64,000 nt of DNA from Bispira polyomma (Eukaryota): NCBI GenBank assembly GCA_965649765.1, contig OZ287758.1:11966001-12030000 (forward strand), given 5' to 3'. The position numbers were made by a program, and so were the translations under genes. Positions 19,346-61,493 of this stretch are shown in pieces; positions within the stretch are counted from its first letter, which is position 1, and each line of letters starts with the position of its first letter. The notes beneath the pieces were generated by a model. It saw only the letters and a program-made list of their open reading frames with translations. It did not search any database and was not told the origin of the DNA.

Positions 19346-19699
19346 AATGATAGGGTAGGTAGTATATTTCAGCTTTCAGTATATTTCTCCCTTTACCCTT
19401 CACCTTCCTTACCAAAGCAGTAGAGAAACTGTTTATGTAATATGCCGCACTAGTTAACTTATGGTTCTTAATGTCGCAATAATTTAGTTGTTTTGTGCTT
19501 TACATAAAACATTTAATCCATAGGTCAGGAAAGGCACAGAAAATAATAGGGTGATGGGGGCAGGCAGTATATTTCAGCAACTTTTTTTCTTTTTCATAAA
19601 ATTTATTCAGTAATATATATATATATAGAGAGAGATTACATCTAGAAATACCTAATCAAACTAAACAAAATCTATATCTAAATCATCCATACTGAAAAT

Positions 19700-22077
19700 C
19701 TGAATAAACAAAAAAAATCTTACAATATACTTAAATATGCCTAGGGGATTTCTCGTATACATATTTAATATTATTACTATTAATAAGTTTCTTTTTGAAT
19801 TTATGTTGATTCCTACATATCCAAATTACCCATCTAGCTTCAGCCATCAACAAAATTGACAAAGTATTTACATTTTAAACTTAGACTTTTTTAAAGCACT
19901 AAAAAGAACATTACAACAAATAATACTAACCCTTGATCTTGAAACTCTTGATAAAATATCTTCAATATACCTCCACAAAGAAATTACCACATTACAATGA
20001 TGAAACAAATGCTCTAAAGTTTCATTACCATTACAACATAATTCACAACCAGGATTTTTAACAATTCTATTCAAAGTATAAAGATAATAATTTCCTGGTA
20101 AAATCCTATGCACTATCCTAAACGTAATATCCCTACTTTCAGAAGATAATAAACTTGAACTTGTATTGAAAAAACTTCACTCTAATCAATATGAACAAAC
20201 CTTAAACACACTCTAGGCAACTTAATAATTTTCTGTACAAGTACATTATAAATTTTCCTAACTGTTGTAGTTTGAAGATCAAAACTAGGATTCATTGAAA
20301 GTAATTCTTTAAAATTTTTAACAGCAATTTTATACTATTTAGGTTTCACCATACTATAAGGAACATTGTTAAAAGAAAGTTTTTTTAATTTTAAAAAATC
20401 ACCCAAATAATCTCTCAAATCAAAATTTAACCAATGTAAAACCAAATCCTTCCACTTTTTATAACCCCCAAAAATAAAAATCACAATTGCATTACAGTGA
20501 AATTGGTCTCCAATAATTTAACAAATGAGAATTCTCAGAATTCTTAGAAATTAAAGTAATTACCCTCAACTTTTGACTTTCCGACAAAGATTCCCCCGAT
20601 AATAAGTATTAGCCATATTAACAAAATAATCCCCAACAACATCCCAGTTAATCTCATAAAATTAGGCAACCCATCAATCCTTGGTCATTTCTCATTTTTC
20701 ATACCCTTTAAAGCCTTTAAACATTCCCCCTTTGTTAAAACCCCCTCACACGTGAGCTGCTGTTGTATACTTAAAGTGGATAAATCTTTAATAAAATAAC
20801 CGACCAAACTCTGATCCACTTCCTCCTTCAAGAAAGATCCCTACAAAACTTTCTAACATGCTTTAAAATGTCATCCCTCTCACTAACTACAACCCCATTC
20901 CCTACCTCTAATTTCTGTATATTTTTCTTTTCAGCCCTCTTAGTTTCCATCTGTAAAAATACCTTGAAGGTTTTTCATTCCCATCCAAACTCACCTTTGA
21001 CCTAACCCTTGACCCCTCCCTACAACAATCCAAAAGATTATTTATTTCATTTTCAACCCTATGAACATCATCCTTATACACACCAGAATTAACCTTAGAC
21101 AAATCCCAATACTTAAAATACTCTTTTTGCAAATCCTTATATTTTAACCGAACAATTTGATTCAATCTTTTTGAATGAACTTGAATTAAACTTTTACATT
21201 TCTTTTTAAAATCATCCCACATACTAGGACATATATCAATTACATCTTTAAATTCTTTATTACAAAGAGCTGTTGAGTCAGTTTTTAAATTCACATCTTT
21301 CAAAATGGAGGTATTACACTTCCAAAAACCTGGTCCCACAATACACCCCAAATCTGAAATATTCACCTCTAATTTCACCATATTGTGATCACTAATATTA
21401 AATGGTACAGGAATATTTTTAATAGAAGAAATTGTTTTCAAAACTTTCCTTTTCACATAAAATCTGTCAAGCCTATATAACACCTTTCTGCCAACTCCCC
21501 CACCTTCCCAAGTGAATTCCCTCTTTGTTCTATTCAAATGTCTAAATAGGTCTACTAAATTGAAATCACACTTTAACTTGCTAAGCTCCACACCAACTAT
21601 ATCCCCCAGTTCCTGATTTCCACCTTTTTTTATCTAAACTAACATTTTCTACAAAATTAAAATCCCCTCCTAAAACTAACAACTTTTTTGTCACTAAATA
21701 TTTTGATAAACTAACTATAAATTTCTTTTTCTAGCAATATTTAGCATATATACATTTATAAATCTATACTCAACATCATTCATTTCTAAATCCAACACTA
21801 AATACCTTTCCTCATAATCAAAATTCAAACTTTTATATTTAAGACTATGGTTTAGTCAAATACCAACTCCACAATGTTTTTCCCCAAAAGCCCACAAAGT
21901 CTTTTCTCTATATTGTTTACCCCAATTTATCCCCTCCCTTATAATTAAACAATATGTCTCTTAAAGAAATTTTATATCAAAACCTTCCTAATTCACCAAA
22001 TTAAATACATTAACCCGTTTATTTATATCCCTAAAACCCCTGACATTAAATGAAATATTTAAAGTATTCACTGCCAT
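19700..22077 (-). pseudogene. Tx1 copy A ORF2 (APE endonuclease-RT), RT core deleted
   Basis: Starts MAVNTLNISFNVRGFRD; pieces 20908-21591 and 19868-20113; no YADD visible. Confidence 0.8.
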
Positions 22078-22319
22078 AATAAAACAATATTAAAAATACA
22101 CATTATTACCAGAAAAAAAAACCTGCTATATACACAGGTACCTGTCCATTTAACATCCATCAACGTCATAATCCACAAACCATTGTCCATATCCAGTGGA
22201 AAAGTCCAAATCCAATAAACAGTGTCCATCCCATTGTCCAAAACCATAATCCTCAAAAGCACACAAAAAGCCATTGGTTCATATAAAAAGAATACACTAG
22301 TTTGTCCTAACTTTCTTTC

Positions 22320-23452
22320 TCTTAGCCTTGTCCTCCTAATCCTTCTGATCAATTGGCTTTTTTAATGAAATACTAGCCACCTCCATCACATCTTCATCTA
22401 TTACAAGATCCCCCTCACTATCTGTCCAATTATCCTCAACACCAGCATCCTCCTTATCCACCACTCGCTCCTTACTAGTATTAGTATTCTTCGATTTATT
22501 GTCTGATTTAGTATCCGATTGCTGACCCTTCTTAGGTACCACCCTGAAGCACTTGATTTACTCTGTGCTGCTTCATTACCCTTCTGTACCTCCTCCGGCT
22601 CATCCATATCCACTTCCTGTTCCGGCTCCTGCCCCTAAGAATTGTCTCTGGCTTTATTTGCATAGGATTTACGGAATGAACAATCTTCACTTGAATGATC
22701 TTCCAGCTTGCAGTGTCTACAAAAATTTGAAGTGCATTGTGCTCTCACATGTCCAATCTTCTTACATTTAAAGCACACCGGCCTTCTCCCTGGAATAGTT
22801 AATAAAGCCGGCTTTGTTATATTCTTGAAATGGATAGAATCCAAACTAGGTATCTCCACATCCTCATCTACTTCTAACACTATTGTTCTTACAGACGTTC
22901 GAACATGTTGATAATGTGGCACCCAAAACCAACACCCCTCACCAGTCCAAACTGCGATATATGAGCCAAAACATGGGTCATTGGCACATAAACTGGTAAC
23001 CAGTGAAGTCTCACCATTACTACCTCCTTGCACATACAAACTTTCCTAGCTGCAGAAGTCCTAGTTCTGAAAGTTGTAGCCAAACAAGTAGCTGCAGACT
23101 CTGCAGTAGTAAAAGTAGCCAACCATACATTGTTCTGATTCAAAAACCACAGTGCTAGCAAGTCCTTTAAATCCATTGAATCTGAGAGACAACTTATCAT
23201 TTCATCCCTAATAAAAGGTTTACCCTCTCTAGGGAAAATAACCTTGACTGTATACTATTTCCGTGGCCTATGAAAATCCATTTCTAAAAGTGACTGACAC
23301 AAAGATAAACTTTTTATAGCCTTTTTGGCATTTGAAATAGCCTTCTCCACTAAAGCACGCTCATGAGTTGAATGTAAAGTTTTGAAGTCTCTAAATGAGT
23401 CATCCATTAATTGTGACAACGGATCCCTTTATATTTCCTTTCCTTTTGCCAT
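22320..23452 (-). pseudogene. Tx1 copy A ORF1 (gag-like, CCHC knuckles), frameshifted
   Basis: ORF-track pieces 22889-23200, 22635-23039 and 22336-22542 align with ORF1 of copies B and C. Confidence 0.8.
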
Positions 23453-23509
23453 CCTCACTGAATCACTATCACAAAATCACAAACTACTATATTTCAGCAA
23501 CTGCCTTTT

Positions 23510-23941
23510 TTAATTTTTATCATATTTATTCAGTATATACATGTTAAAAAACAGTATCACAACAAAACATACAAAAAAAACATCAATCAAAATTAACTGA
23601 AAAAGAAAACCAAAGTTTTCAAAATCAAACGTATAAATTTTCTAGTAAACTATATACAGAAAAATAACTATAAGGCACAAAAAATATATATTTAATTTTC
23701 ATAAAATTTATTTAGTATATACATATTAAAAACAGTACCACAACAAAATATATAAGAAAAACATCAATCAAAATTAACTGAATAAGAAAACCAAAGTTTT
23801 CAAAATCAAACGTATCAAAATTCCAGTAAACTATATACAGAAAAAATATCTATGAGGCACAAATAATATATATTTTTTAATTTTCATAAAATTTATTCAG
23901 TATATACATATTAAAAACAGTACTACAACAAAATATACAAG
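23510..23941. repeat. About 183-bp tandem repeat (2.4 units) made of the Tx1 copy B 3' terminus
   Basis: Units start near 23510, 23692 and 23877, each beginning TAATTTT...ATTTATT(C/T)AGTATATACAT.TTAAAAACAGTA. Confidence 0.85.
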
Positions 23942-24243
23942 ATTTGGCCATTTAAAGACTAGCAAGAAAACAAAATTATGGTGGCCCAGGTTTGAATAAT
24001 TAATAGTGACCAAAAATAATTTGCATTAAAAATTAAATTATAGACAATACATTAAAGAGCAACAATTAAAGAACAAAAAACATAATCCGGATCAAAGCCA
24101 TATATATAGTCTATCAAAAAGGAAACCAAACACAAAAGAAAAATAATGTTTCTATACAAAAAACAATAGCCATGTACATGCCCAAACAAAAGGACACATA
24201 ATAAAAACACTACTCACTAATTATGGTTACAAAACGATGAATA

Positions 24244-27025
24244 TTACCACTTTAAAAACATCAAATTAAGACTACCAACTTATTATCTACAACTGTACAC
24301 AAAATATTATTATATGCCCATAAATTTTTTAATTTTACTCTAGTTAATCTCTGAAAATCCGATTTAATCCTAACTTTAACATTTTTTTTATAAATTTACA
24401 TTTCAAATAATTTGAATTAATATACTGTTCCTCAAACTTATGTAAATTTCTAAAATACTAAATAACCAACCTCCCCTCAGCAATTAATACAATAAATAAA
24501 TTATTAAGATTTTTAAATTTAGCTTTTGAAAAAGTGTTAAAAATAATATCTCTTGATGTAATCTTAACTGTACATTAAGAAATCTTCGATAGTAATTCAG
24601 AAACATGAACCCAAAGTGGATGAGCAACCTGACAATAATAAATAAATGAAACAAACTTTCTGCAGCTATATTACAAAATGTACACTTTGGGATTTTAACT
24701 ATTTTATTCAATCTGTACAAGTAATCATTTATGGGTAATATGAGATGCGATATCCGGAAGGTCACATCCCTACTTTCAGGCGACATCAAAGGGCAATTCA
24801 AATTTGAAAAAGCACCTGGAAAATTTATATTTGGATAAACACCTATTATTCTTGGAATAATTAAAACTTTTTGATTCAAAATACTATAAACCTTTTTTTA
24901 GATCTAAATCAGGATCAATTTTCAACATATTTTTCAGGCTGGACATTGCATTCAAATAAAAGAGAGGTTTTGAGAGACTATAAGGTTTATTATTATGAGT
25001 GAAATTAGGAGACAAATATTTCCTTAAATCCAACTTAAGCCAATATAATGCCAAATCTTTCCATTTCCTATACTCCCCATATATAAAATCACAAAGGTGT
25101 ACTATTTGGAAAGCCTTAATCTTTAATTCAATATTCACTAAATTAATTCCCCCTTCTCCATAATCCAGATATAAAACTTCCATTTTTAAACATTCAGTTT
25201 TATTCCCTCATACAAAAGAAAACATTTCAGATTAAAACTTATTCAAAGTATAAGAATTTCGAGGAATTTAGCTGAAAAACAGATCCAGATTTACACGATC
25301 TAAAGCTTTGGACTGATCCAGCGACAAAACAATGCACTTTAACCGCATTTGACTATTATAATCAATAATATTTCTCAATAAATGAATGTTGTCCTGAATA
25401 GATCTCCCAACTACAGCGGATGTTTGGTCAATGTTTACTAAAAAACCCATTACTTTTTTAACCCTATTTGTAATACATTTACTTATTATTTTATAATCAC
25501 AGCATAGCAAAGAGATGGGACACCAATAATTAAGAGGATGTGCTTTCTCATTATCTTTACAAATCAAAGTAATAACCCTAAGTTTTTGTGTATCCAAAAG
25601 AGTACCCTCCCTAAAACAGGTATTGGCCATATTTACAAAACTATCCCCTAAAAGATCCCAATTTAACTGATAAAATTCTTTTGGCAAACCATCAATACCT
25701 GGAGATTTATCATTTTTCATACCTACAACTGCCCTATAGCACTCCGCTTTAGTTAAGCGACCTTCACATAACTTTGCTTGTTCATTAGTTAAAAGAGCCA
25801 AATCTTTAAAAAAATAATCTACTAAATTCTGATCTATTTCTGTTTTATTAAAAAGTTGCTCATAAAATTGCCCTACATGTTTTAAAATATCATCTTTATT
25901 TTGTACAAATTTCCCATCCCCAATTTCTAACTTTTCAATCATTTTTCGCTCAGCTCTTTTCTTTTCCTTATTCAAAAAAGGTTTCTCATCATAATCCAAA
26001 TGCTTAATTTTTTATCTAATTTTTGACCCTTCAAAACTCTTATCCTAAAGGCTATTAATTTTCCATCTCATATTTTTGAATATCATTTTTATATAACCCT
26101 GGAGTTAATTCTTCTAAATTCTTATATTTAAAATACTTTTTTTGTAACTCCCTGTACTTCAATTTTGTAACCAAATGAAGTCTTTTAGAATGATTTTGAA
26201 TTAATTTCCTACATTTACTTTTAAAAGAATCCCACATACAGGGAGAAATAACTGGTACATTGTGTAACTCTCTATCCCACAAAGCTTTTAAATCTAACTT
26301 GAAGTCATGGTCTATTAAAGTATTAACATTACATTTCCAAAAGCCAGGCCCTAACGTTTCAATAGAGGACAAATTTTGAAAACCCATATTAACAACACAA
26401 TGGTCACTAATATTGGATAAAACAGGGGAATTCTTGATAGTAGAAATTTGGGTAGCAGTTTTTTTTGACACATAAAATCTATCAAGCCTACATTGAATTT
26501 TGTCATGCCCATTACCCGCCTCCCATGTAAACTGTCTTAATGAATGGTTTTTATGCCTGAATGGATCTAAAAGGCCAAAGTCCCTTTTCAAATGATTAAT
26601 TTCTAAAGCACCCACATCACCAGACTTCAAGTTTCCACCCTTTTTATCTAAACTTAAATCTTCAACAAAATTAAAATCCCCTCCCAAAATAATAGTTCTT
26701 TTTGAAATTAAAAATTTTGATAAGCCAGAGATAAAAAGTTTTCTTTCTCCAGAATTATTTGGTGCATAAATATTAATAAATCTAAATTCTGTATTATCAA
26801 TGTCCACATCTAAAACCAAAAACCTACCTTGAAAATCAAACTGAAAATTTACAACCTTAAATTTTAACAAATGGCTGAGCAAAATACCAAACAATGTGTC
26901 TCCTGCAATAAAGTAACATCAAAATTTTCCATATTTACAATATTAAAAACTTTCAAACGCTTATTATAATCCCTAAAACCTCTCACATTTAAAGTGGCAA
27001 TATTAAAAGTTTTATTTACAGACAT
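24244..27025 (-). pseudogene. Tx1 copy B ORF2 (APE-RT-zinc finger), deletions in the EN N-terminus and RT core
   Basis: NVRG, QETH, GGDFN, RLDRFY, SDH, KSPGIDG; sequence jumps at about 25265 past the YADD region. Confidence 0.85.
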
Positions 27026-27610
27026 TATATGTCATGTATTACAAACTTAAAAGTATATATATTGTGCCAAAATGTGCACAAAAACCTGGTTTTCCATACT
27101 AAATAAACCCAAATAAACATATCCTAAACCAAAGAAAGAAATACACAATATCCACAATATAAACCAATACAATATAGCCAAAGAAAAATTAAACATCCAA
27201 TATATCCAAAGTACAAATTAATCAAAATACAAACAAAAAGAAAGAAAATTATAACATAAATTACAAACAAAATCAAAGTCCATAGCCAAAAACAAAATCA
27301 AAGTCCTCAAAAATCCTATTTAAATTTACTTTTTGTCTTTTCTGTTTTCCTTACCCTTTAGTTTTTGGTCCCGTTCTTTCTCTCTCTTCTCCTCTTTCAA
27401 TCTTGTCATCACCTTCTTTCTTTTAACTGCTTGAAACTATGTGTCCTCAGGACGGCTAGCCCCACTGCTGTCCCGCTCATCGATATTGAGGGTATCCGGA
27501 CTAATATCCAGCCTCATGCTGTCAGACAGTGAAACCTTTTGAATAGCTTGGTCCCCCTCCTGACTCCAATCAATTTTACCGTCTTTACCATCCTTAGTAC
27601 ACTGCAACTC

Positions 27611-28626
27611 CTATCCCTTTGAAGTACCAGAAACTACTGCTGCTCCAGATATCCCTGCATCACCCTCCACAGAAACCACCACTGAGTCAGCACCAGCCAC
27701 AGGTCCAGTCACAGAATCAGCATCTTCCCCAGGATCAGCACCCGCCACAGTATCAGCACCCATTAAAGGTTCAGCACCACCAACAGAAACAAGACTAGGA
27801 TTAACCACTACAGACCCGTCTTCAGCACTTGATGTCACTTCTACTTGAAGATCAACTTCTGGTTCATCAGTAACCATCTGATCCTCCTTCGATGGGCCTG
27901 TAGCGGCGACAGTTCTAGCGTAAGTGTTAGATACTGTACATTCCTCCGAGGTATGCATATCATATTTGGCACAATGTCTACAGTAAGATGTAGTACACGT
28001 CTGCCTCGTGTGACCGATCTTGCTACATCTAAAACACACTGGTCCACGGCCTGGCACAGTAATCAGAAATTTCAACTGCTCCTGACTGATGACCTAACAT
28101 GTTCATACCCTTTAACTTTTGAATGATCCCACTTCATAGAATAAACTGCACCAAATCGTGACAGGAAGGCCAGCAAAGATGCCATTGGTACAAAAGGTGG
28201 CAACCAGTGTACCCCGACATGCACTACATTCGGAGTCAAGGAGATAACTCTACCTTCATAGCTTTTTATTCGAGGTATGCTTCTCAGTGCATGTAACACA
28301 GCTTCCTTGGTTGATAGCGAAATCAGCCACTTGCAGTTGTCATTCAATGGCCCAACTGACACCAAATAATTCACATCCAAGCCAATCCCAACCAGGGATT
28401 CCATCACTGTATCACGCAGGTAAGGTATGCCACTTGGCGGAAATTGAACTTTAACTGTAAAATCCTTTTCAGTCAATGCGTTTACATCCTCCAACAAGTC
28501 ACTCAAAATATCACTAGTATTTACACAATGTCTCAAATTGTCCTTTGCTCTGTGATACTCCTCTGAGGTTGTCATTTCCTTCAGACTACTCAAAGCACCA
28601 TTAATCAAATCATTCACTTTATCCAT
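27611..28626 (-). pseudogene. Tx1 copy B ORF1
   Basis: [37 protein letters not shown]; frameshift/deletion near 28075. Confidence 0.82.
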
Positions 28627-29065
28627 TTTTCTTTTTCAAAGCAAAAAAACAAAAAAAAAACACTTAAACTCAAGAATCAACAATCCAATCTCGATTAGTA
28701 AAACTTCTTTACCCTTCCACCTTTACCTTTACATACCAAAGCGGTGCATACATATAAGTTGAGAAACTGTTTAAGTAATATGCCGTAGTAGTTAACTTAT
28801 GGTTGGTAATGTCTAAACAATTGAGTCGTTTTGTGTTTTAGGAAATTTTTTATATTGATCCATTCCTTCATTTTTTTTCTGTTGTATCTTCTGAAAATCA
28901 GTTCAGTCCATAAGATAATATATGAAGTGTGAAGACATATGAAAAAGAATAAATTTTTTCTAATAACAACTTTTATTGTATACACAACTTGTTTGGGATG
29001 ACATAACAATAATGTTAAAAACTACTAAGACAAGTTAGAAACTACTAACAGACACATAACATACT

Positions 29066-30398: not shown

Positions 30399-32513
30399 CT
30401 AACATGAGTTTTCTAAATTCATACTGTAGTTGCACCAGCGAGATAAAATATCCGCATAAGTGTTACTTTCACCTTTTATATGTTTAAATTCAATCTGTAT
30501 ATCATAAGAGGCCATTAATAACCAGATACTTCTGGCGCATGCCATAAGAAATGTATCTTTAATTTTATGTGAATTTAGCATGTTTACTACTGCCAGATTA
30601 TCACACCAAATTGTGATATGCTTTTTACTAAAATGCTTTACCCATGTTCTTATGGCCAACATGACATTTGCCATTTTGAAATGTACAATTGTCAAATACA
30701 ATTTCACATCTTCTGGTATGTCCAAAGTATACACTTTATTGCCATACTTGGCACCCACAGCAAATAACGACGCATCGACATATACATGCTCTGTACGGTT
30801 ACTTTTGTCAATGTGCATTTCTACTGAACCATTAAATTTCTCCAAAAATACATTGAACCAATTTATATCCCTATACAAATCTGGCGATAATTTAATAGTA
30901 CCTTTTTTAGAGGAGTCCCTAAGAGCTTGTAAAATTCAATTAACAAATAAACGAGCAGGTTTAATACACCTATGCAAATATAATAATTTGCCAGTGAGTT
31001 TTTGCAGTTGATGCTTGGTGGCCGTTGTTTTATAGGTCCACTGTTTACATATTGTTTTAATTTGTCTAATTTTTTCCTGTGGTATGGTTAGCGTACCCAG
31101 AACCGCGTTTACACAGATACCCATACATACTACCTCCTTTTAGGGCTTTCAAGTTTAGAAACGCTAATAGGAATACCAAGTTTTTCCAATAATACACAGA
31201 GAGTTATAAGCACCCTGCGCATGCGCAGGATCCTCTACTCCAATGAAATCGTCAATATAATTTATAAGCCAGTATCTTTGTGTTTCCATAAGGTGTCTTA
31301 TACTGTCCATTACTAATTGGCAAATTCCCGCCCCCGTACGAAATCCAAATGGAAGCGCGATGTCAATGAAGTTTTTATCTTTCCAGATAAGCCCCAAAAC
31401 AGGGTAATCTAATGGATCTATACGCAGGTTTCTAAATGCCCTCTTAATGTCCACCTTATATATGAGTGCATTATATCCTAAATCATTAATACGCTTTACT
31501 ATATGATCTACTGTAGGGTATGATAACTTATATTCCATCCCCATATAAACATCTTTTTGAAGACTGTCGTTAACCGACATTCCATGTGGCCATGATAAAT
31601 CTATGATTACTCTGGTGGCCCCATCTGGTTTAGGTCTAGCCATCATAGGTGAAACATGTGTTTTCTCGAAAGGAAACCTTGAAAATGGCCCAATGATGGC
31701 CTCATGTTTAATTTCCGTTTCAAAATAATTTTCAACTCCTGTTGGTTCCTGGAGAGCAGATTTAGGGTTAACAATAACAGCATTATGGACAAACTTATTA
31801 TAGTTGATGTCAAGAGGGAATCCATATTCCAAAAAGTCACAAATAATTTTATATTTATAGTCTTTTAGGTAAAGACGCCAATTATTTATATTAAGTTGTG
31901 AAGGAACCTTGAGTTGAGCGCCAACATAATTGGGTACATTTGTTCTAGCAACAATTCCATTTGCCTTAGCCACCCATTCCTTTAAGTTATTATATGCAAG
32001 AGCATTGTGTGCAGAACACGTGGCTTCCGGAATTCCATACCAATTGAAACCATAAACGAGATCCTCATGACTTCCATTTTTGCCAAGTACGTCGCAAGTG
32101 GCAGTGTGTGAAGCATCAGTAGCCATAGGTACATTATGATTTGTTGTACAAGTTATAAGTTTTTTGTTTTTGCCATTACTTAATTCATAACCCATGTACA
32201 CATTATGACTTAGTATATTATTAGCCATGTGTGCATTATGACTTATTGCACTCGTGATAGAGTTTCCATTTTCCCCAATTCGTGAGTCACAGCCCATATA
32301 GACCCCATTTCTTGATGTGTCCTTATGGATGTGTGCACTATGACTTGTTATACACGTTTTAAAATTTCTATTTTCTCCATCACGTAAGTCATCATCACAG
32401 CCCATAAGAGCATTATGATTTGCAATCTCAGTAGGGATGTGTACATTATGATTTGTTACACAAACAGTGTACTGTCCATTATTTATTACGTGAAACATTG
32501 GGAATGTGTACAT
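30399..32513 (-). pseudogene. Ngaro-like reverse transcriptase / RNase H, frameshifted
   Basis: ORFs 31164-32513, 30936-31124 and 30399-30878. Confidence 0.88.
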
Positions 32514-33914
32514 TATAAATCACGTTATCACTTGTGTGTATTAAGTTTCGTTTCTTGCTTTTAAAACCCATATGGCCTATAGCATTACTTCTTTTAGTTT
32601 CACGTACATTATTATTTTCAATGTTAACTATATTTTGTTCACTTGTACAACTGGCTTTGTATGTATATATTGTGCCACGTTTGTTCAAAACATGTATGCC
32701 CGTATTGGTAACAGCTTTTGTACTCATGAAGTCATCACTAAGCTCCCACCCTGTAAAATCCTGATCTAAATTGTGCTCGACAATTGTTGAATTATTTGTT
32801 TTGCTTGTATTTATACTAAAATTCAAAGTTTCCATAAAACCACTAAATTCTTTAGTAGTATATATAGTGTACCTTTCCATATCAGTTTTATTTGTAAAAT
32901 CAACATGATTAAAACCATGAGTACTAAAATCTTTAATAGAGTGTACTGCACTATATTCTATACTACTATTGTAGTTTGTGTGTGTAAAATCATTGGTACT
33001 TATACTATAAGAATAACTGGTTATGCCAGTGTGCACTTTATAGGCTTTTAACCCATCATCAGTGTCATTGGTGTAAGTTATGAAAGAAGTATCATAACAG
33101 TTGTTTGCGTTTCCCTTATTGAAAACATATTACTCTTGACACGAGGACATATCCCATGTGTCATAAATACTTGTATATTCTTTATTTAATGTGTTTTCAG
33201 AAAAATCCATATTGACACTAGTTGCTTCACTTGTAGATATATTGGCCATATTTCTACAACCTCCCCGCCTTATAAGGCTGTTCTGCCAAGTAGGGATATT
33301 GCAAAACCTGCACTCAAAATCACGTGTAGAACTATTATGTGTGTGCAATTTTTTTTCCCAAGCCACTGATGTAATTGTGGCAAATACAGAATTTTGTATT
33401 ACTGGTGATGTCCATTTCTCCATAACCTACCACGTGTTTTCCCAAGTTAGAGTTTTTATGTACACGTCTGTCGGCGACAATATTTGTTTGTCTAGCACTT
33501 TGGTAACTGACCTAATTACCCACGTAGGCATACACAGACATATAATTTGTTACATTATAGTCACTACTGCCATATAAATCATTACTGGCCATAAAAGTTT
33601 TTGCTTTATTGCAGGCATGACTGTCATAACCAATACACATGCTTTTACTTTCATTAGTATATACTGTACATGCAAAACTTTCCATATCGAGTACTTTAGT
33701 ATTTCAAGAAATAGTATTTGAATCTACACTCTCTACTACCTTATTAATACTTTCTAAATACGTGCTTTTACTCTTTTCAAAACTAGTAGTTAAATCTACA
33801 TCTTTTGAAATACTGTTTAAATATGCTTCATCATAAACTGTTATACCAACATTTTCCCGTAATCTGTTACACTTTATACTTTTAGTGTTTTCAGATGTTA
33901 GGTTACTACCTTTA

Positions 33915-34789: not shown

Positions 34790-35932
34790 ATCAGCAGAGG
34801 TCCAGAGAGAAAAACACAGCCTAGAGTTTTATAAAATCTCCCAAGTTAAAATCCCACGTGTTTAAACTGGTTCAATCTGTCTAGTTCTCTCAGGTCACCT
34901 CGCTTCAAGTACACACGGCACAACCAGAATACTCCCAGAATGTAGCAATGCTGAGGATTATATAGACCAAATAATTGCGGGAAAACGTCATATCGTTCAC
35001 CAGAGTTATTCAAGCCCACCCACACAGCAAACGATTCTTGTATTTTAGTTCTAGCAATGCCTATGTCTATGCAAACCTAGCCTAGTACCTAGTCTTGCTA
35101 GGTCTCTTATTACTCTAATGTACTGATATATATTGCTATCTTATACGCATATATTTTCACAAGTATCCAAAATAAAAGGTAAAGCATAGTCAGAAGCATC
35201 AACAGAATATAGTAGGAACACAATCTGAACTTGTAATTGGACTCATTGTGCTGTATGTCCATGTTAAAATGACATCCCTAACTCACATTAAAATACTTGT
35301 ATTAGGTTAACTTAGTCTAAAATTACATGGCAAGTAAATTATTCATACCATAGCCACCATAACTTAATCACTCTAATGAGGTACATAAAGAGTTGGTTAA
35401 ATTTTTTTTTTTTATTGGGCACGGCAGGTTAAAAGAAATTTTAGGAAACCAATAGATCTTTTGTAGGCTACCAATCCTTTTTCTTTCTGTCCTGACTCGG
35501 TTCCCCTGTCTATAATTTTTTGCTCCTTAACTATCTAACCCCTTTTTCCACCGGCCTTCCTCTCTTTTTTCATTTCTCTCTTCATCTTTAGATCCGTACT
35601 CCCTCCACTCTGGAATCTGGTTGCCATGTCAGAAGTGACTGTAGATCACTTAACAAGTGGGATGTCAAAACTTATAACCTATAGATCCTCATATCATGCT
35701 TATTAGTGGTTCTAGACCTTTGGAATGTGACGACAACTTGTGGAAAGTCATTGTTTAAGTGTTCAGGATTAGGCCACAAATGTGATGAGAATAGTGTAAA
35801 GTGCCTTTTGAATGCAACCTACAAAATAAGGCACTTTTTTACATTATGTTATTATTGATCAGAAAAAGGACATACCAGCATTCACCAAATCCTGACTTGG
35901 TAACTGTGATTTGGATGTGATTAGCAACCTTG

Positions 35933-36484
35933 TATTGCAGTCAAAATAGTCACTGACCTATAATTAATTGTAGAAATTAAATTAATTTTGCAGCATACGT
36001 TTACTTAAGGGCCCAATAATAACAATATTAAAAAAAATATAATGGATGAAAATCTAAAAACCACCCCTCTCTCTCACCCCCACCCCCTCCAATTTACACT
36101 CCTCTGTGTCTCACCTTCCCCCATTTACCCTCCTCTAGGTCACACCCCCTCCCCTCCTCTCACTCCTACCCTTCACTTACCCCCTCTAACAAAACCATGT
36201 TATGATGTCATTTGGATGTATTCAATACATAATAATGACATCACTGTAAAGTTATGACATTTTTTTTACCCTCTGATGTCAAAGCTGCGCTTAGTTACAC
36301 AATTAACAGTTGTACATTGTGTAACAATATGAGCCTTTTTAAAAACATGTAAAAATAAATAGATTCACATTCATTACATTTTCTTATATTTTTAATATGT
36401 TATTATTGGACCCCTAAGTAAATGTATGCTGCAAGAGTAATTTCTGTTGCAATTATTCCTATGTCACTATTTTTGACTGGACTA
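35933..36484. mobile_element. MITE-like structure with about 110-bp imperfect inverted repeats, same terminus family as the host repeat
   Basis: 35938-36045 is the reverse complement of 36380-36480 (TTGCAGCATAC.TTTACTTA.GG..CCAATAATAACA); C-rich core. Confidence 0.75.
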
Positions 36485-43664: not shown

Positions 43665-43771
43665 TTAGGCAATATATTCATATACTTTGGGTTGCCCATT
43701 TACAATGTTGATAACCACTGCACCATCTTCAACTGTAATGGTGTCATCTGTAGCTAGGTAGTTCACGTATG
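43665..43771 (-). CDS. alpha-amylase exon 11 (...[11 protein letters not shown])
   Basis: tacag acceptor; G.PKVY C-terminus typical of GH13_1 domain C; TAA stop. Confidence 0.85.
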
Positions 43772-52700: not shown

Positions 52701-55700
52701 CTTAATCCCTGAGGGCATGGTCAACGGATTTCATTCTGTCCATCCACCTATACAATTGACCATTAGTTACCACAATAGTTTTCTCTCCACATATGTGCCA
52801 CATTAAACTGGACACTGAACAACAAGCACAAAATTTGGTGTGCTATTTACATGAAGTTATACCGTTGGTTTTATGATTTTAGGGTTTTAGTATTCTATTT
52901 GTGTGTTTTACATGATTTTGAGTTTATTTGATTAAACATTATCTGCATCAAGATGGGAAAAACTGGGATCACAGATTCTGCTGTTGTGCTTTAGAAGATG
53001 CCTAGCATCAATAAAGCGTGTTAAAATGCATAATATCAATACTAATAATAACTCACACATCCACCATAACCCAGATGTCCCTTTCATGACAGGAGGCCAC
53101 AAGGTTATGGAGGTCCTCTTCAGTACCATAGTGAGAATTCACTTCATAGATATTCTTAGCCCAGTAACCATGGTAGCCATTGGGCACATTCTCCACAATG
53201 GGGGATATCCAGATAGCATTAGCCCCTAAGTCATCAATGAGAAATATAGTTTTATTAGGATTTACATTTTCATAATGATTTTAAAGTTAAACACATGTTA
53301 TGTTATTTCAACAGCTTTTTTAATTTTAAATTAATTATGCTTCAATAAAATTAAAATAAACCCTGCACTATGTGGAAAAAACCCCATTTAATTTCCTGAA
53401 TGTGTATCGCCCTGTATAATCGGGCAGTGTAATCAGAAATGAACGCAAAATGTCAGGGCTATAGAACAAACTATATTAAGACCTGCATTCAGTTATTCTG
53501 TTATAACTCTTTTTCCAGAAAATATTTTGTCACTATGATTATCTGTATTGTGAAAAGTCTACACTTCCGTTGATAACAATAGAAGACAGACATTGTTTAG
53601 TGAATGTGATTTAGTTTTAAGAAACAATAGATACAATACCTAGGTTTTCTATATAGTCTAATTTGTCAATAATTCCCTGCCAAGTGCCATTACACCATGT
53701 GCTCAAGTCTTCACATTCCGGATCATCAGGACCCCCAGTCTTGGCAAAGCGATCTGTTAGCACCTAAATATTGTATTGTATATATTTTAGTGCACTTTAT
53801 TTAATGCGAGACATCTTTTAAAGTTTAATAACCAAACTGATCAACCAATTATGTATCCTACAACATAGCCTGGGTCGTCATCAGTAATAGTCTAGTGAAT
53901 TTAGGCCCCAAAATAGGTCAACCTAGAAATAATTGCAACAGAATTTTATGGATGACAGAATGGATGGAAATCTATATATGTTTTACATGTTTTAATCACA
54001 TACTAAAAATATAGGAAAATATAATGGATAGAAATCCATATATGAGGGATAGGAAGGATAAGTGAGAAAGAGGGGGAGCCAGTGAGAGAAAGGAGGGGTC
54101 ATTGAAAAAAGGGGGAACTGAGTGTGAGAAAGAGCGGGGTGGTAAGTGAGAAAAAGATGGGGGTAAGGAGCGAGAAAGGGGGGGACGATAAGTGAGAGTA
54201 GGGGAGGGGGGTAAGTAATAGAAAGAGGGAGTAAGTGAGACATGGGGAGGTAAGTGTGGAAAACAAGGAGGGGAGGGGAAAGTTAGAGAAAGAGATGAGT
54301 GGAGCTGGAGAGTGAGAAAAACATGGGATAGGAGGGGTAAGTGATACATAGGGGGAGTGGTAAGTGAGAAAAAGATGGGGGGGGGTTAGTGCACGAAAGA
54401 GGGAATAGGAGGGGTTAGTGAAACATAAGTGTGAAAAAGGTGGGGTTATTCGTGAGAGAAAGATGGGAGTAAAAGCGTGAAAGGGGGGCAGTAGGTGAGA
54501 CATGGGGCGGGGGTAAGTGTGAAGAAGGGGGAAAGTTAGAGAAAGAGGGAGTAAGTGAGAGGTACGTAACAAAAAGAGATGGGGTAAGAGAGAGAAAGAG
54601 TTAGGTAAGGTGACTTAGACAGAGGTAGGAAGGTAGCAGGCGGTAAGTGAGAGAGGGTAAGAGAGAGAGAACGGTGGTAGGGGGAGTTAGAGAGAAAGAT
54701 AAAAGGCAAGGGAGAATGGTGTAAGGTCAGGACAGAGAATGACAGGGTGATGGGGGCAGGCAGTAAATTTCAGCAACTGTCTTACTTTTTTTCATTTTTA
54801 TAAAATTTATTCAAATATACATGTTAAAAACAAGTACAAAATCTCAACAAAAAATACAGACATAGCATACAAAAGATATATATGTACAAAAAACCTGTAG
54901 GATATAATCCCTATAAATTAAAGTTAAGGCTTTCAAATAAAATTTTCAAAATGAAAGGAAAACTGTACTATACTAATACACAAACAACTAAATCAAATTA
55001 TGGTTGTAAAGATTTGAATAATAGAAAAAAAACAAAAGTTATTGTGAAAATTAATAGAAATATGACAAAACTTAAAAGAAAAAAACAATTAGAAAATCTT
55101 ATCTGTGTCAAGTACTTCTAAACATACATCAAAGAAATCAAGCCACAAAGAAAAAAGAAAAGAAAAAACAACAAAAAAACTACAAATACATATAAACATA
55201 AACCATACATATAAAAATAAACTGCTCCACAAAATGGTTGTTAAATGATGAATATTAAATCAAAATAAAAATTCCAAATACCTGTTTCTAACTTTACATA
55301 TAATTGTATTAAAAGCCCATAAATTAAGAAATTTTGATTTTTCTAAACGTAAATAATCTGCTCTAATTCTAAGTTTTAAATTACTAATAAAAATACACTT
55401 TATAAAATTACTATTTACATTATTCTCATTAAATTTTTGTTTATTTCTACAAATCCAAATGACCCAACGTGCTTCTGCTAACAATATAATATACAACTGA
55501 TTAAGATTTTTAAATTTTGATTTTTTAAAAGTATTAAAAACTACATTTTGAGAACTAATACATACATTAGAAGATGAGATCTTTGACAAAAGGTCCTCAA
55601 TAAAAAACCATAAGGCATTGATTAAAACACAGTCAAAAAATAAGTGTTCCAAAGTTTCCACATGAATAGTACAAAAATAGCAATTTGGATTTTTAACAAT

Positions 55701-58700
55701 ATTAAATTTATATAAATAATTATCAACTGGCAAAACTCGATGTAAAATTCTAAATGTAACATCCCTACTTTCAGGTGAAATACTAGATAAACTTAAATTA
55801 CTAAAAGCTTCTTTATAATTGACATGAACATTACATTTAATAATTCTAGGAATACTGACAACTTTCGGTAATAACATTTGATAAACACTTTTAACAGTAA
55901 CACTCTTTAAATCAACAGCTGGCTGTATACTTAACAATTCTTTAAAATTCTCTAAAGCAAACTTATAAAAATCAGGCTTTTCAAAACTACATGGAGTACT
56001 GTTTAAAGAAGAGATATCTGACATATATTCACGTAAATCAAGTTTCAACCAATATAAAGTAAAATCATTCCATTTTTTATAATGACCATGAAGAAAAGCT
56101 TTTAATTTTGTTTCAATATGAATAAGACCTAAACCCCCTTCTAAATAACCATTATATAAAGTACTTCTATTCACACATTCTGTCTTATCCGACCACACAA
56201 AATGAAACATAACAGTAGTAAACTTTTGCAAATAAACAGAACTTAAGTTAAAAACAGAACCACAATACCACAACTTATTCAGAGCCAAAGAGTTTAAAAG
56301 TACACCTTTCCCTTTTAATTTTAAATTCCTATTTTTATTCATATTAATCACCCTTTGAAATTTATCCCAGACTGAATCCCAAGTTTCCATCATGAAATTA
56401 TTATTTCCAAATTTAACCCCACAAATTTTTAAAGAAACCCTTGTCCATTGTAATCCATATAATCTTTCATCCATATCTCCCCAATCACCAATCCAAAGAC
56501 AAAAAGACTTTTCTTTATTTAATTTAGCCCCAGAGGCCAAACCATAAAGTTCTGAAATATTTAAAATTTTTACAACTGAAAGACGATCTAAAATTACAAA
56601 ACTACAATCATCAGCATATTGACTAATCCTTATCTCAGACTTACCCCCTGGAATTTTAAAACCCTTAATATGACCATCATTCCTAATTACATGAGCAAAT
56701 GGTTCTATACTTATAACATATAACAAAGGAGAAAGACTACATCCCTGTCTTACACTACGCTGAACCTCAATAATATCTGTAAAAAAACCATTCACCAAAA
56801 CAGTACTTTTAATATTATGATATAAAATATGTACTCATTTTATTAAGTCAGATCCAAAACCAAATTTCTCTAAAACACTAAACATAAAACTATGATCAAC
56901 ACGATCAAAAGCTTTGGCCTGATCTAAAGATAAAATTATACATTTCATATTTTTTTGATGGGAATAATCAATGACATTTCTCAAAAGGTGAACATTATCC
57001 AAAATTGACCTTCCTAAAACTGCTGCTGTTTGATCTATATTAATAATGTTTCCCAACACAAGTTTAATTCTATTAGTCAAGGACTTACTCATAATTTTAT
57101 AATCAACACATAAAAGAGTTATAGGTCGCCAAAAGTTAAGTAAATGAGGCTTTTCTGAATTTTTACAAATTAAAGTTACCACCCCGAATCTTTGACTTTC
57201 AGACAAAGTTCCCAATTCAAAACAAGTATTAGCCATTTTAAAAAAATAATCGCCCAAAAAGTCCAAAAATTCAACATAAAATTCCTTTGGTAACCCATCA
57301 ATTCTTGGTGATTTTCCATTTTTCATTTTAATTAAAGACTTATATAATTCAAATTTTGTTAAAGACCCTTCACATACTAATTTCTGTTCATTTGTTAAAA
57401 CTGGCAAATCTTTTGTAAAATAATCAATTAAACTCTGATCTACCTCTTCTTTACTAAATAATTCCTGATTAAACTTTTTAACATGCCTTAAAATATCATC
57501 TTTTTTATCAACAAATATGCCATTTTCAATTTCTAACTTTTTAAGTTGCTCCTTCTGGGCTCTTTTAGATTCTAACCTTAAAAAATATCTAGATGGCTTT
57601 TCATTAAAATCTAAAAGCTTAGCCTTTGACCTGACCTTTGCCCCTTCACTCATTGAATTTAGAAAATTATTTATGTCAATTTCTACTTTTTCGTAATCTT
57701 CCTTGTATAAATCTGGGTTTGAGAAATGCAATTTTTTAACTTTAAAGTATTCTTTCTGTAAACTTTTATAATTATCCCTGTTAGCCTGACTTAATCTCTT
57801 GGAATGTAATTTAACCAAAGCCTTACATTTCTGTTTAAAAGTGTCCCACTGACAAGGTTCAATTCTGCTTTTGGAACTAAATTCTTTCTGACATAAATCT
57901 TTTAAGTCCAATCTTAAAAACGGATCTTTCAAAATTAAACTATTACACTTCCAAAAACCTGGACCTATTAAATTATCAAAATTAGACAAATCAAAAACAG
58001 TCTTAACCAAACTATGATCAGTAATGGCAAAAGGCATAGGCACATGCGAAACAGAAGAAACAGAATTAATAAAACTTTTTGAAACATAAAACCTATCTAG
58101 TCTACACAAAATTTTCCTGTCACCAAAAGTTCCCTCCCAAGTAAATTCCCTTTTATTCTTATACAAAGCTCTGTAAGGGTCCCCCAAACAAAAGTCACTT
58201 TTTATTAGATTAAGTTCATTACTACCAATATCCCCCCTACCAATATTACCACCTTTTTTATCCAAAACTAAGTCTTCCACAAAATTAAAGTCACCCCCAA
58301 AAAGTAAAGTTCTTTTAGTAACAAAATATCTTGACAATTTAAAAATAAGACTTTTTCTTTCTTTTTGATCATTCGGCATATATACATTAATCATTCTAAA
58401 TTCTACATTATTAATTGTAACATCTAACACTAAAAACCTCCCCTCAAAATCAAAACTGAAAAATTAAGATTTGAACTTAGCAAAATAGCCACCCCACACG
58501 AGTGTTTTCTGAACCCTCTTACATTTAAAGATCCTATATTTAACCCATTAGAAAAGGCCATTTTGAAATAAAAGTACAAAAAAAATATACAAAAACTTTC
58601 TAATACATGTGAAAAATAACAACATACAGTTGCTTAAACTCACAAAGTATATATATATAAATAGATACAATTTTTGACAATAATACTAATAAAAATCAAG

Positions 58701-61493
58701 CAAACAATGTCTTTAATCATAATCAAAAATCATAATCCAGTCCATAAAATATAATCACAAACCTTGTTCTGTCATGTCCATAATCCAAAAAATCATAAGT
58801 CCATAAACAGTTCAGAAATCAAAACCACGAAATCACTTTAACTTAGCTTTTTTCAGTTTCTTTTCCTTATCTTTATCGTCCTTTATCTTGGTCTTGTTCT
58901 TGGTCTTGGATCCAGACCTTGTGTCTGGTCGTTTTGCAGCCACCTCTACAACACTTTCTACACTCTCACTCCCACTACAGTCCGCCTCTGTATCACTTAT
59001 AGTCCCAAAAAGTCCATCTGCAGAGGGTAAACTTTTGTCTAGTGAATCATCCTGATTACTGTCTACCTTTATAATCTTAGGCTTGTCTGTCTTATCCGTA
59101 TCCTTAGTGCTCTTACTGTCCAGACTGCTCACTGACTGCTCTGCCTTCCCTGCCTTCCTGTCATCATCCACTATCTTCGCTGTCTTCCTGTCATCATCCA
59201 CTGCCTGCTCGTCCTCAGGTACATCCATCTGGGTATCATCCGCTACACCTTGCTGCTGTTGGTCCACAGTTGTCCCCTTTGCCTTTGCTGCATATGAATT
59301 CGCAAGCGAGCACTCCTCTGATGAATGCGTAAACAGCTTACAGAATCGACAAAAGGATGCTGAGCACTGTGCACGTGTGTGGCCAGTTCGCTTGCAGCGA
59401 AAGCACACTGGGCCACGGCCAGGGACAGTTACCAACATCGGATAACTCTTGTTGTCATAAAATATTGATGACAAAGACGGTACCTCAACACCTTCATCCA
59501 ACTCCAAAACAAAAGAACGAACTGATGACTTCACACTTTTGTAACCGTCTATTCTACTGTGGTCCCAGTCTGCTGAATGTACAATTCCATATTGGGAAAG
59601 GCTAACAATTACATTAGACATAAGCATAAACACTGGAAGCCAGTGAATCCTTACAGTAGTAAACGTTTTGTTCATTGAGAAAACCCGTCCTCTCATATCC
59701 CGAATCGTCGGAGTACTTGGAATTAGCCTGACTGCCGCTTCCTTGGTGTTGACAGTCACCAACCATTTACTGTTGTCTGCAATAGGACCTACTGCAGCTA
59801 AATCATCTGCAAACACACCTACCTCTGCCAGAGAATGAAAAATTTCATCTCTCAAATAAGGTTTCCCTTGAGGAGGAAAAGTAACTTTAACTGTATACTC
59901 TCTGTTCATCTCCACAGATCCTGTACAATCGAAATGAAATATTGACTCCAGAATTGATGACTGATGCACTGACTCCCTCATATTAGCTGCAGCCTTCTCA
60001 TACATTTGATTAGTCGAAATGTTTTTGAAGTCTGAGAATGCTTTGTTGATAGCCAAATTAACTACTTCCACATCCATGGTACTCAAAACAAAATTCTAAC
60101 TACTAAATTTTTTAATCCAAACTTTGCAACTGAAACATAAAGTCACCTCCTTCGTGATCAAGGTGTCCTTTGTGCCAGGTAAGTATCAAACAACAACTAT
60201 CTTACTCTTCCATCTTTCCTCTTACTTACCAAAGCAGTGCATACATGAAAGGTTTAGAACTTGTTTATGTAATATGCTGCAGTGGTTAACTTATGGTTGG
60301 TAATGTATGAATAATTTAGTTGTTTTGTGCTTTAGATAATGTTGTTAAATTCATAAATTTATGCATTCCTTCATTATGTCCTGTTGTAAATAATTTATTC
60401 ATAGCATTCCGTAGCCACCATAACTTAATTACTTCAATGTAGTACATGAACAGTTTGTGTATGTTCCTTTGGCATGAAAGGTTAAAGGAAGTTTAATGAT
60501 ATTAACATAATAAATATAATTGGTAGGGGTTCCTCCCCTTTTTCTTTCCTTTCTCACTTTCCGTGTATTTTATTTTATTTATTGAAGCAATGTCCACCAT
60601 ACACAAAGTCATTATGATTCCACTATGTGAATTGGACCAGTCTTCTCTGTGCAAATACGTATCTATTTGCCAAGTCAAACTGCCCTCATATAATGCGTAA
60701 GAGAAAGGGACTTGAAGAAATTGTAGGACAGTGGTGGCCAAGTGGTTTTCAAGTGTTAACTTTAATATACCCAGGTTCCCACATGTATCTGAGAACCGTA
60801 CAGATTGAAGCCCATGCATATGGGAAAGTTTGCGGGTACTTGTCATATGTGGCCATCACTATAGAAACCAAAGATGTTGAAAAAATTAAATTTAAATATA
60901 TCAAATGTAACTATCACTGCTACTGTTAAAATTTTTTAACTGTACTTTTATTTTGGTAACTACACAGTTTTCTGGAAATAAATTTACCCTTTTGTAATGT
61001 CTTTGGATGGTCATACTTCCGCTCCATATATACAAATGGGGGCCGTAGTGCCTTAGTGGATATACGTAGTTTCATTCACAATCACTGACCTCTCACCATT
61101 GTGGTTTTGATTCCTGTTTGTCACTTTATGTGGGAAAGTTTTGCAGGTACTTGCCGCAGGTATGTGGTTTATAGTGCTTCAGCTGTGCTTTCTAGCGATC
61201 TTGATATATTACCTCATCTGTTAAAAGCGACGTAAAACTAAGTGCTAAATTCCATACCATACAAGCGTTATTTTCTGATATTTAAGATTTATGAAAAAAG
61301 TTTCTCTGACAAAAAAAATGGCACTTAAATGGACTAATAAATTTATTAAAGAATAGAATATTCTATGCATCCTATGGAGTGTCTTTACCTGGTATATAAT
61401 TCTAGATTTCCATTCTTCAGGAGTTCTTTGACCTTGAACAACCAAGGCAACACAAAAAACGCAGAAGATTGCAGACTTTAGCATCTTCAGCAT
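43665..61493 (-). CDS. Secreted alpha-amylase, GH13 subfamily 1 (fungal/Taka/Dictyostelium type), 11 coding exons, 482 aa
   Basis: Exons 61389-61493, 53640-53763, 53057-53225, 52039-52204, 50996-51133, 49204-49391, 47035-47179, 46302-46412, 45776-45889, 44906-44987 and 43665-43771; all introns GT-AG with consistent phases, total 1449 nt. Motifs: signal peptide, [74 protein letters not shown]. Confidence 0.93.
44151..44393 (-). mobile_element. SINE family A, full length, in amylase intron 10
   Basis: GGGGCCGCGGTGGCCTAGTGG head, GAGTTCGACTCCC B box, (CAATT)n tail. Confidence 0.85.
44906..44987 (-). CDS. alpha-amylase exon 10 (domain C)
   Basis: tttcag acceptor; gtaagt donor in phase 1, matching exon 11. 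Confidence 0.78.
45776..45889 (-). CDS. alpha-amylase exon 9 ([10 protein letters not shown]...LVFTR)
   Basis: tttcag acceptor, gtaggt donor. Confidence 0.85.
46302..46412 (-). CDS. alpha-amylase exon 8 ([26 protein letters not shown])
   Basis: tacag acceptor, gtaaag donor. Confidence 0.92.
46700..46940 (-). mobile_element. SINE-like repeat; its tail recurs at 53820-53886, cut by the host repeat
   Basis: Reverse tRNA-like head CCCGTAGCCGAGTGGTTAGGG; TCAACCAAT.ATGT.TCCTACAA.ATAGCCTGGGTCGT shared. Confidence 0.65.
47035..47179 (-). CDS. alpha-amylase exon 7 (ADNHDFPRF)
   Basis: tgtag acceptor, gtatag donor. Confidence 0.9.
48709..49191. mobile_element. MITE in amylase intron 6
   Basis: CCAGGAGCGGTATTCACTAA ... 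TTTGTGAATACCCCCCCCTGG TIR, with an inner GGTATTCAC / GTGAATACC pair. Confidence 0.7.
49204..49391 (-). CDS. alpha-amylase exon 6 (DFW...LMGECW, acid/base Glu)
   Basis: gtcag acceptor, gtaagt donor. Confidence 0.88.
50996..51133 (-). CDS. alpha-amylase exon 5 (LPDLN...GYRVDTVKH, catalytic nucleophile Asp)
   Basis: gcag acceptor, gtaagt donor. Confidence 0.92.
52039..52204 (-). CDS. alpha-amylase exon 4 (VPNHMG, domain B)
   Basis: ttcag acceptor, gtaact donor. Confidence 0.9.
53057..53225 (-). CDS. alpha-amylase exon 3 (ANAIWISP...YHGYW...VMVDV)
   Basis: ttag acceptor, gtgagt donor. Confidence 0.9.
53640..53763 (-). CDS. alpha-amylase exon 2 (VLTDRFA...LDYIENLG)
   Basis: tttag acceptor, gtattg donor, GH13_1 motif. 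Confidence 0.9.
54040..54725. repeat. Degenerate purine-rich minisatellite (GGGGTAAGTGAGA...), same family as 17935-19345
   Basis: Directly visible; same position within the host repeat. Confidence 0.9.
55260..58561 (-). pseudogene. Tx1 copy C ORF2 (APE endonuclease, reverse transcriptase), short EN deletion and two frameshifts
   Basis: [19 protein letters not shown] joins directly to CGVAILL; ORFs 56835-58430 and 55260-56798. Confidence 0.9.
58833..60077 (-). CDS. Tx1 copy C ORF1, gag-like nucleic-acid-binding protein (ZCCHC3-like region, 2 zinc knuckles, acidic then basic tail)
   Basis: Open frame from ATG at 60077; [14 protein letters not shown] and [14 protein letters not shown]. Confidence 0.88.
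   Translation of the reverse strand: MDVEVVNLAINKAFSDFKNISTNQMYEKAAANMRESVHQSSILESIFHFDCTGSVEMNREYTVKVTFPPQGKPYLRDEIFHSLAEVGVFADDLAAVGPIADNSKWLVTVNTKEAAVRLIPSTPTIRDMRGRVFSMNKTFTTVRIHWLPVFMLMSNVIVSLSQYGIVHSADWDHSRIDGYKSVKSSVRSFVLELDEGVEVPSLSSIFYDNKSYPMLVTVPGRGPVCFRCKRTGHTRAQCSASFCRFCKLFTHSSEECSLANSYAAKAKGTTVDQQQQGVADDTQMDVPEDEQAVDDDRKTAKIVDDDRKAGKAEQSVSSLDSKSTKDTDKTDKPKIIKVDSNQDDSLDKSLPSADGLFGTISDTEADCSGSESVESVVEVAAKRPDTRSGSKTKNKTKIKDDKDKEKKLKKAKLK
61389..61493 (-). CDS. alpha-amylase coding exon 1 (signal peptide to WKSRIIYQ)
   Basis: ATG at 61493; CAG|gtaaag donor. Confidence 0.88.

Follow-up and report, generated by a model that had tools for sequence, protein, structure and literature searches.

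Three families of long interspersed nuclear elements (LINEs), here called A, B and C, each have a minus-strand copy in a 64,000-nucleotide stretch of Bispira polyomma DNA (assembly GCA_965649765.1, contig OZ287758.1, positions 11,966,001 to 12,030,000), which is referred to as the window. They very probably represent three families of an L1/Tx1-type lineage, equipped with an apurinic/apyrimidinic endonuclease (APE) and a reverse transcriptase (RT), that is nearest to Keno and targets a short zone of a host repeat, with the U2 small nuclear RNA (snRNA) gene as the ancestral target. This reading draws on directly observed 3' junctions, target-site duplications, empty sites, orientation, family relationships and targets of the relatives. 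The target choice was exact in A and graded in B and C.

Junctions of the three elements with the host repeat

A sequence-only reading had proposed that three minus-strand copies abut a common host motif, and motif searches, direct reading and self-BLAST confirmed it. In the window, AGGGTGATGGGGGCAGGCAGTA occurred exactly at 19548 and 54744 (chance expectation 0) and ATTTCAGCAACTG at 19571 with 1 mismatch, at 23491 and at 54767 (chance expectation 0.16). Right behind the motif, at 19583, 23506 and 54786, started the T-runs that correspond to the poly(A) of minus-strand elements. The motif at 23488-23505 was indeed present but proved to be merely the duplicated target of A, lying between the tandem A and B copies.

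Host copy 1 began with a degenerate GA-rich tandem array (18231-19305, plus strand) that showed internal repeats in self-BLAST and resembled the arrays on the left side of the target in further copies of the host. Next came a host unit, degenerate and empty (19330-19510, plus strand), in which the target-like GGTAGGTAGTATATTTCAGC was directly joined to the host right module (19419-19507, matching 28757-28840 and 60258-60339), and then the left half of the occupied unit (19515-19582, plus strand), identified by motif searches and direct reading and including the target motif at 19548-19582. The defective family A LINE (19583-23487, minus strand) was delimited by tblastn against intact open reading frames (ORF1/ORF2) and by its 3' end motif and short A-run at host offset 0; it kept minus-strand remnants of ORF1 (22584-23407) and ORF2 (19755-22089), the latter riddled with stops and having lost the RT core. 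Behind it, direct reading placed the second copy of the A target-site duplication (23488-23502, plus strand), which also holds the target used by B. The defective family B LINE (23506-28702, minus strand) comprised ORF1 (27848-28617) and ORF2 remnants (24264-27025), and its 5' end was common to two other B copies, L014 and L085. The right half of host copy 1 (28703-28856, plus strand; self-BLAST and direct reading) closed this arrangement, so that A and B form a tandem pair within one host copy.

Host copy 2 carried a GA-rich array and the target motif (54744-54785) in its left part (54046-54785, plus strand), followed by the 5.4-kb family C LINE (54786-60186, minus strand; ORF1 58833-60086, ORF2 55260-58430). 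The extent first given for C was corrected to a true 5' end at 60186. The element opened with a head derived from U1 snRNA, starting from U1 nucleotide 1 (60088-60186, minus strand; Rfam U1, 32.8 bits, E=5.9e-07 on 261 nt), and the right half of the host copy lay beyond it (60192-60351, plus strand).

The target-site duplications noted earlier for A and C were borne out, that of A at 15 of 15 positions (19568-19582 and 23488-23502) and that of C over 14 nt with 2 mismatches (54772-54785 and 60192-60205). Host sequence resumed past the LINE 5' ends, as had been claimed, but at 28703 and about 60192; the positions 28735 and 60227 proposed before were too late. In self-BLAST, 28702-28856 matched 60195-60351 (82%) and 19419-19507 (86-88%).

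All three window copies are dead, with ORF2 residues 546-890 missing in A and 623-833 in B, and with an in-frame stop (56835-56837) plus an N-terminal frameshift in C, whose ORF2 was 96.7% identical at the protein level to that of an uninterrupted family C copy (L101). The 3' untranslated region (UTR) of B (23506-23942) consisted of about 2.4 tandem units of about 182 bp, and more units were seen in other B copies (e.g. contig 1, 44.757 Mb).

The host repeat and its empty sites

When the 157-bp right half of the host was used as a query, at least 436 candidate matches were found in the 1.04-Gb assembly, and 30 host copies were fetched and oriented for scoring as empty or filled. About 25 of the 30 were empty, with an unbroken passage from the GA-rich side across GGCAGTATATTTCAGCAACTGCCTTTACCC to the right module. 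The filled ones numbered four: L014 held a B copy, L026 an A copy truncated at its 5' end and L017 a remnant of about 14 nt from a LINE 3' end, and the fourth was the window C copy. The occupants of these four sampled copies were only the LINE families studied here. The host is therefore an independent, multicopy, interspersed repeat that is mostly empty at the insertion site. Since most sampled copies were empty there, the shared flank is not part of the LINE UTRs, a possibility under which the sequence-only reading would have fallen.

The opposite view, that the shared flank belongs to the LINEs' own UTRs or that the three loci are one duplicated composite locus, without any choice of target, is barely credible as a whole. 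Duplication does occur: five C-in-host copies on contig 9 between 24.8 and 30.3 Mb (L046, L047, L049, L050 and L051) had identical flanks and represent one insertion spread by segmental duplication, not five independent insertions. Against it stand the empty host copies continuous across the site, the differing flanks of A and B copies on different chromosomes, the target-site duplications that bracket the elements, and an A-A tandem (L078) whose members are parted by the 15-bp duplication only. For A and B, the empty sites and unique flanks already refute this explanation, and the earlier statement that the loci are not one duplicated locus stands for these two families.

Host copies had a core of about 250 bp in common, and two subfamilies differed outside it. 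On the left, host copies ended in a GA-rich array that differed in length and bordered on unique DNA, and the right ends varied as well. Host units were in tandem at times (L004, L008, L010 and window 19330-19582). The longest host version ended in a 45-residue relic of the start of a LINE endonuclease. This relic N-terminus (..DIDILVIAESWL..) was present at window 35827-35946 (plus strand) and at 2420-2557 of L005; about 90 candidate copies were found genome-wide, with no long open frame in any. A motif search and a left-versus-right BLAST of host copies found no terminal inverted repeats. Without such repeats, and with a variable GA-rich left end and, in the long version, an endonuclease relic at the right end, the description of the host as DNA-transposon-like was left unsupported.

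Several other ideas about the host were tried and set aside. The sequence CCTAGGAATAATTGCAACAGAAAT was considered as a host terminal repeat, but its position and orientation vary and it looks like another element; it recurred near the host in L004, L005, L006, L012, L015, L022 and L028 and probably marks one end of a different element that is short and abundant. The core does not appear to be a disguised RNA gene or a short interspersed nuclear element derived from U2, as an Rfam E-value scan of 20 empty copies gave no snRNA, tRNA or 5S match in the core. At gathering level, Rfam gave no matches in the window. A hairpin or cruciform at the target was likewise unsupported, with DNA folding z-scores of -2.0, +1.9 and +0.6 in three copies.

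Target specificity across the genome

Copies of each family were found by genome search with the 3' end of that family, their flanks were read, and the junction offset was measured against an empty host copy. For A, 11 of 11 independent 3' ends lay at the identical nucleotide, offset 0 (after CAGCAAC). These copies were spread over 7 chromosomes with differing flanks, and sublineages within the set that were just 72% identical used the same nucleotide. For B, about 12 of 16 copies were within a host zone of about 30 bp, at offsets 0, 4, 9, 18, 19 and 29 with two CC(TTT)/ACCC hot spots taking most of them, and one B copy formed a B-B tandem. For C, about 7 of about 24 were in the host zone (offsets 4, 8, 18 and 26); the remainder were elsewhere, one of them at the U2 snRNA site. 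Orientation was identical in every host insertion of A, B and C. No more than about 3e-5 of the genome belongs to this zone, so each of the three families is enriched there to a very high degree.

Strict site specificity is thus limited to A, and the idea of one site for all three families holds exactly for A but not for B and C, which use a zone of about 30 bp and, in many C copies, land off target. What the genomic flanks and empty copies support for the three families together is a shared insertion zone with fixed orientation in an independent, mostly empty multicopy repeat.

Some observations weigh against this reading for B and C. Scoring covered every candidate for A but just the 40 best for C, and B rests on a sample of flanks. 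The youngest C copies were mostly off target: among those with at least 96% identity to the window copy, 1 of 8 was in the host, compared with 5 of 8 at 95% or less. The apparent preference of C may therefore be inflated by retention bias; the age trend could reflect either a recent relaxation of specificity or better survival in the repeat. For B and C, a 9-bp preference (CCTTT/ACCC) together with host abundance might explain most of the enrichment. In its full form this becomes a rival explanation, in which B and C are not host-specific at all and have a short, L1-like TTT/A preference within CCTTT/ACCC, the host being rich in such sites and off-host copies being lost faster. The age distribution of C agrees with it, as does the fact that CC(TTT)/ACCC occurs twice and that both copies coincide with the B and C hot spots (offsets 4 and 18). 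In addition, an off-target C copy (L040) and an off-target B copy (L098) share another repeat at nearly the same position (...TCCAATCCTATTT.AATATAGGAT.AGTA), which may be a second preferred site. However, about 4000 chance CCTTTACCC sites would be expected genome-wide by composition (an estimate, not a count), so that 12 of 16 for B still needs host copies in the thousands or extra recognition. Nor does the rival account for the invariant orientation or for the 11 of 11 A copies at a site that is not TTT/A. We consider it unlikely.

Protein domains and classification

The uninterrupted copy L101 was used as a search query only. Its ORF2 of 1168 aa contained, in Pfam, Exo_endo_phos (17-243), RVT_1 (535-746) and zf-RVT (994-1053), together with GDFN and YADD motifs. 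In this N-terminal APE, central RT and C-terminal Cys/His zinc motif it has the layout of the L1/Tx1 group. A PDB search aligned ORF2 with human L1 ORF2p over residues 12-881 (E=2e-67). The matches at E<=0.001 were L1 ORF2p and the L1 endonuclease, and none was to the R1Bm or TRAS1 endonuclease; an endonuclease or RT closest to R1/TRAS-type proteins, as in the R1 clade, was not found. ORF1 carried two CCHC knuckles (residues 228-241 and 246-259) with a weak zf-CCHC match in Pfam, and no Pfam match to Transposase_22. On these knuckles it is of the Tx1 type, as the RRM/CCHC (type I-like) kind of ORF1 is tied to Tx1 and not to mammalian L1 (PMC5203782).

In the C-terminal part of ORF2, A and C were 55% identical and B was about 41% identical to the others, which supports the view that the three are separate families within a single L1/Tx1-type lineage. 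The ORF1 proteins had been described as sharing motif-level identity only; their identity was higher than that, 33-52% over 70-180 residues.

Relatives in snRNA genes

Relatives inserted in U2 genes were found in three other assemblies (L102, L105, L106 and L107), with 41-55% ORF2 identity (P0001, P0002 and P0005 at 48-55%, the more distant P0009 at 41%). Their junction was poly(A)|GTATCTGTTCTTATCAG, often in head-to-tail arrays. The own-genome U2 array on contig 11 (29.516-29.638 Mb, 1.29-kb unit) had 8.3-kb interruptions holding relatives 55-58% identical to C. In the same genome, L072 and L077 had 3' junctions in U2, and in L074 it was the 5' junction that lay in U2, accompanied by a 12-bp duplication. 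This U2 family was about 70% identical to A in the ORF2 C-terminus. The affinity to Tx1 was supported indirectly but strongly, since the nearest relatives are APE-type LINEs specific for U2 snRNA genes, by which Keno is defined; A, B and C would accordingly sit in the Keno lineage of the Tx1 clade. Insertion at the conserved U2 site was seen in 0 of 11 A copies, 0 of 16 B copies and 1 of about 24 C copies (L035). Because U2 insertions are absent or single in these families and yet their relatives lie in U2, they are better called Keno-derived than strict Keno.

In L035 (contig 11 near 29.79 Mb), the A-run of the C copy was followed by 14 nt of U2 and then by another family, so C has used the U2 site. 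Downstream of the C copy, at about 1915-2400 of L035, this further family, D, had a longer U1-derived head and its own ORF1. Many such elements surrounded the U2 gene array on contig 11 (29.49-29.84 Mb).

A further relative, L104 (ENA assembly ERZ22147071, contig ctg30849l; 52% ORF2 identity), ended (3' junction near 8050) within U1 genes belonging to a tandem array of U1 and 5S rRNA. A listing from 2015 gives only the DNA transposon Dada-U1 as U1-specific (PMC4640811), and an APE-type U1-specific LINE such as L104 may be unreported so far. The 5' head of C corresponded to U1 snRNA nucleotides 1 to about 48. Heads from snRNA or other RNA genes were looked for on A and B and none was found.

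The 3' terminus AATAAATTTTATGAAAA plus a short A-run was common to A, B, C and the U2 and U1 relatives. This bears on the possibility that targeting rests on RNA-DNA pairing and not on the endonuclease, with read-through or head sequences of the LINE transcript annealing to the target. The U1 head on C and the same 7-nt target-like AACTTCT (plus strand) at the B 5' junction in three independent loci (window, L014 and L085) speak for such pairing. However, the 3' ends of A, B, C and the relatives are nearly identical and their targets differ, so the 3' terminus cannot encode the target, and no target-derived sequence was found behind the A-run inside the elements. Pairing is a highly improbable basis of the choice, which the endonuclease would more probably make.

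Phylogeny and probable changes of target

Trees were built with the decayed window copies of A and B (RT core missing), with X at each break, as well as with the C-terminal parts. In the whole-ORF2 tree, B, (C, A) and the outside U2 pair made up one clade, below which first the U1-specific element and then another U2-specific one branched off. In the tree of 389 C-terminal residues, which included own-genome copies, A grouped with the own U2 family (100/98) and C joined them (96/94). An approximately unbiased (AU) test rejected host-targeting families as a clade without the U2-specific family, both for A+B+C (p=1e-4) and for A+C (p=0.005). It must be held against this result that the groups were chosen after the tree had been seen.

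As the U2 family is sister to A and nested among host-targeting families, the target appears to have changed more than once. By these trees, U2 was probably the original target and at least two changes of target followed, and the AU test together with the topology indicates that host-repeat targeting is derived and that the host-targeting families are not a single clade. The suggestion that a mobile element is the safe harbour of the lineage was therefore not borne out; on the trees its ancestral place would be the U2 gene. Similarity between the U2 and host nick sites was tried as a cause of the switch and found too weak, the median match being 12/24, a value equalled by 5.6% of random anchors, with 0.6% matching the best copies.

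Two sister families of one genome, about 70% identical in the ORF2 C-terminus, each have a nucleotide-exact target of their own, the host for A and U2 for its sister; together with C (host, U2, elsewhere and a U1 relic), they may form a natural retargeting series in an APE-type endonuclease, a proposal we put forward tentatively. If it is true, residues for site choice could be mapped from the series, which bears on the engineering of site-specific retrotransposon insertion.

Proposed course of insertion

By analogy with target-primed reverse transcription as established for L1/Tx1, the endonuclease would nick one strand within the short host zone. With its 3' end set free, the nicked strand, which ends in ...CAGCAAC(T) at A insertions and in ...CC(TTT) at those of B and C, would then prime on the short templated A-run at the conserved 3' terminus, and a second nick 10-15 bp away would give the target-site duplication. 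The duplication regenerates the target, and new copies can therefore land beside old ones. A regenerated target would account for the tandem pairs, both the A-B pair of the window and the A-A, B-B and C-D pairs at other loci. The lineage would have started from the U2 snRNA gene, where the sister families in the own U2 array still are, and have taken up the host repeat secondarily, A turning strict and B and C staying loose. C would still land at U2 now and then and, to judge from its U1-derived head, would once have resided in a U1 gene.

Other features of the window

A different retroelement remnant, unrelated to A, B and C, was present at 30399-33036 (minus strand), with a weak RVT_1 match and an RVT_3 (RNase H-like) domain. 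Two intronless TRIM-like ORFs (RING, B-box and weak NHL) flanked the region at 14272-16428 and 40879-42855, both on the plus strand. A run of 163 N (gap or masked) occupied 7141-7303.

Comparison with known systems

Keno comprises Tx1-clade APE-type LINEs specific for U2 snRNA genes, according to the accounts of Kojima and Fujiwara (2004) given in PMC4640811 and PMC4494074. The outside relatives and the own-genome sister family resemble it in ending at poly(A)|GTATCTGTTCTTATCAG of U2, in domain order and 3' terminus, and in forming tandem arrays within U2 arrays. Unlike Keno, A and B were never in U2 genes and C was there a single time among the copies sampled; they mainly target an interspersed repeat, for which the Rfam scan of 20 empty copies detected no RNA-gene homology.

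With mammalian L1 (human structures 8sxt and 8uw3) the families share the ORF2 architecture and, presumably, target-primed reverse transcription from a nick ending in T, and the B and C hot spots resemble TTT/A. They differ from it in the CCHC knuckles of ORF1 in place of Transposase_22, in the short templated A-run tail and in the strong target choice.

Target choice of a LINE within a repeat is already published for Xenopus Tx1L in Tx1D and for crocodilian Tx1-Mar (PMC4494074). As far as Tx1L in Tx1D is described there (citing Garrett et al. 1989 and Christensen et al. 2000), it likewise has a LINE at one site and in one orientation within a multicopy host that is also found empty and has internal tandem repeats. 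The present case has the same feature of an independent multicopy target that also exists free of the LINE. By the same account Tx1D is of piggyBac type and has terminal inverted repeats, whereas such ends were not found in the present host.

The closest parallel is Tx1-Mar of crocodilians, in which several diverged families that cluster with Keno share Mariner-N4_AMi as target, with U1- or U2-derived heads in some of them (Kojima 2015, PMC4494074). Both systems have diverged, Keno-clustering Tx1 families with one shared repeat target, graded specificity and snRNA-derived heads in some, as in C. In crocodilians the families prefer two regions of a Mariner DNA transposon, whereas the present families belong to another animal lineage and use one zone of about 30 bp, one of them exactly to the nucleotide. 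The general picture of how such elements work is unchanged by our finding, which adds an independent case, from a different animal lineage, to the Xenopus and crocodilian pattern of snRNA-specific Tx1 elements moving to another repeat and of diverged families sharing a site. New here are the differing degrees of strictness with which three families use one zone, and the nested U2-specific family, with the at least two target changes that it implies. The sister pair with exact but different targets is suited to mapping the determinants of site choice.

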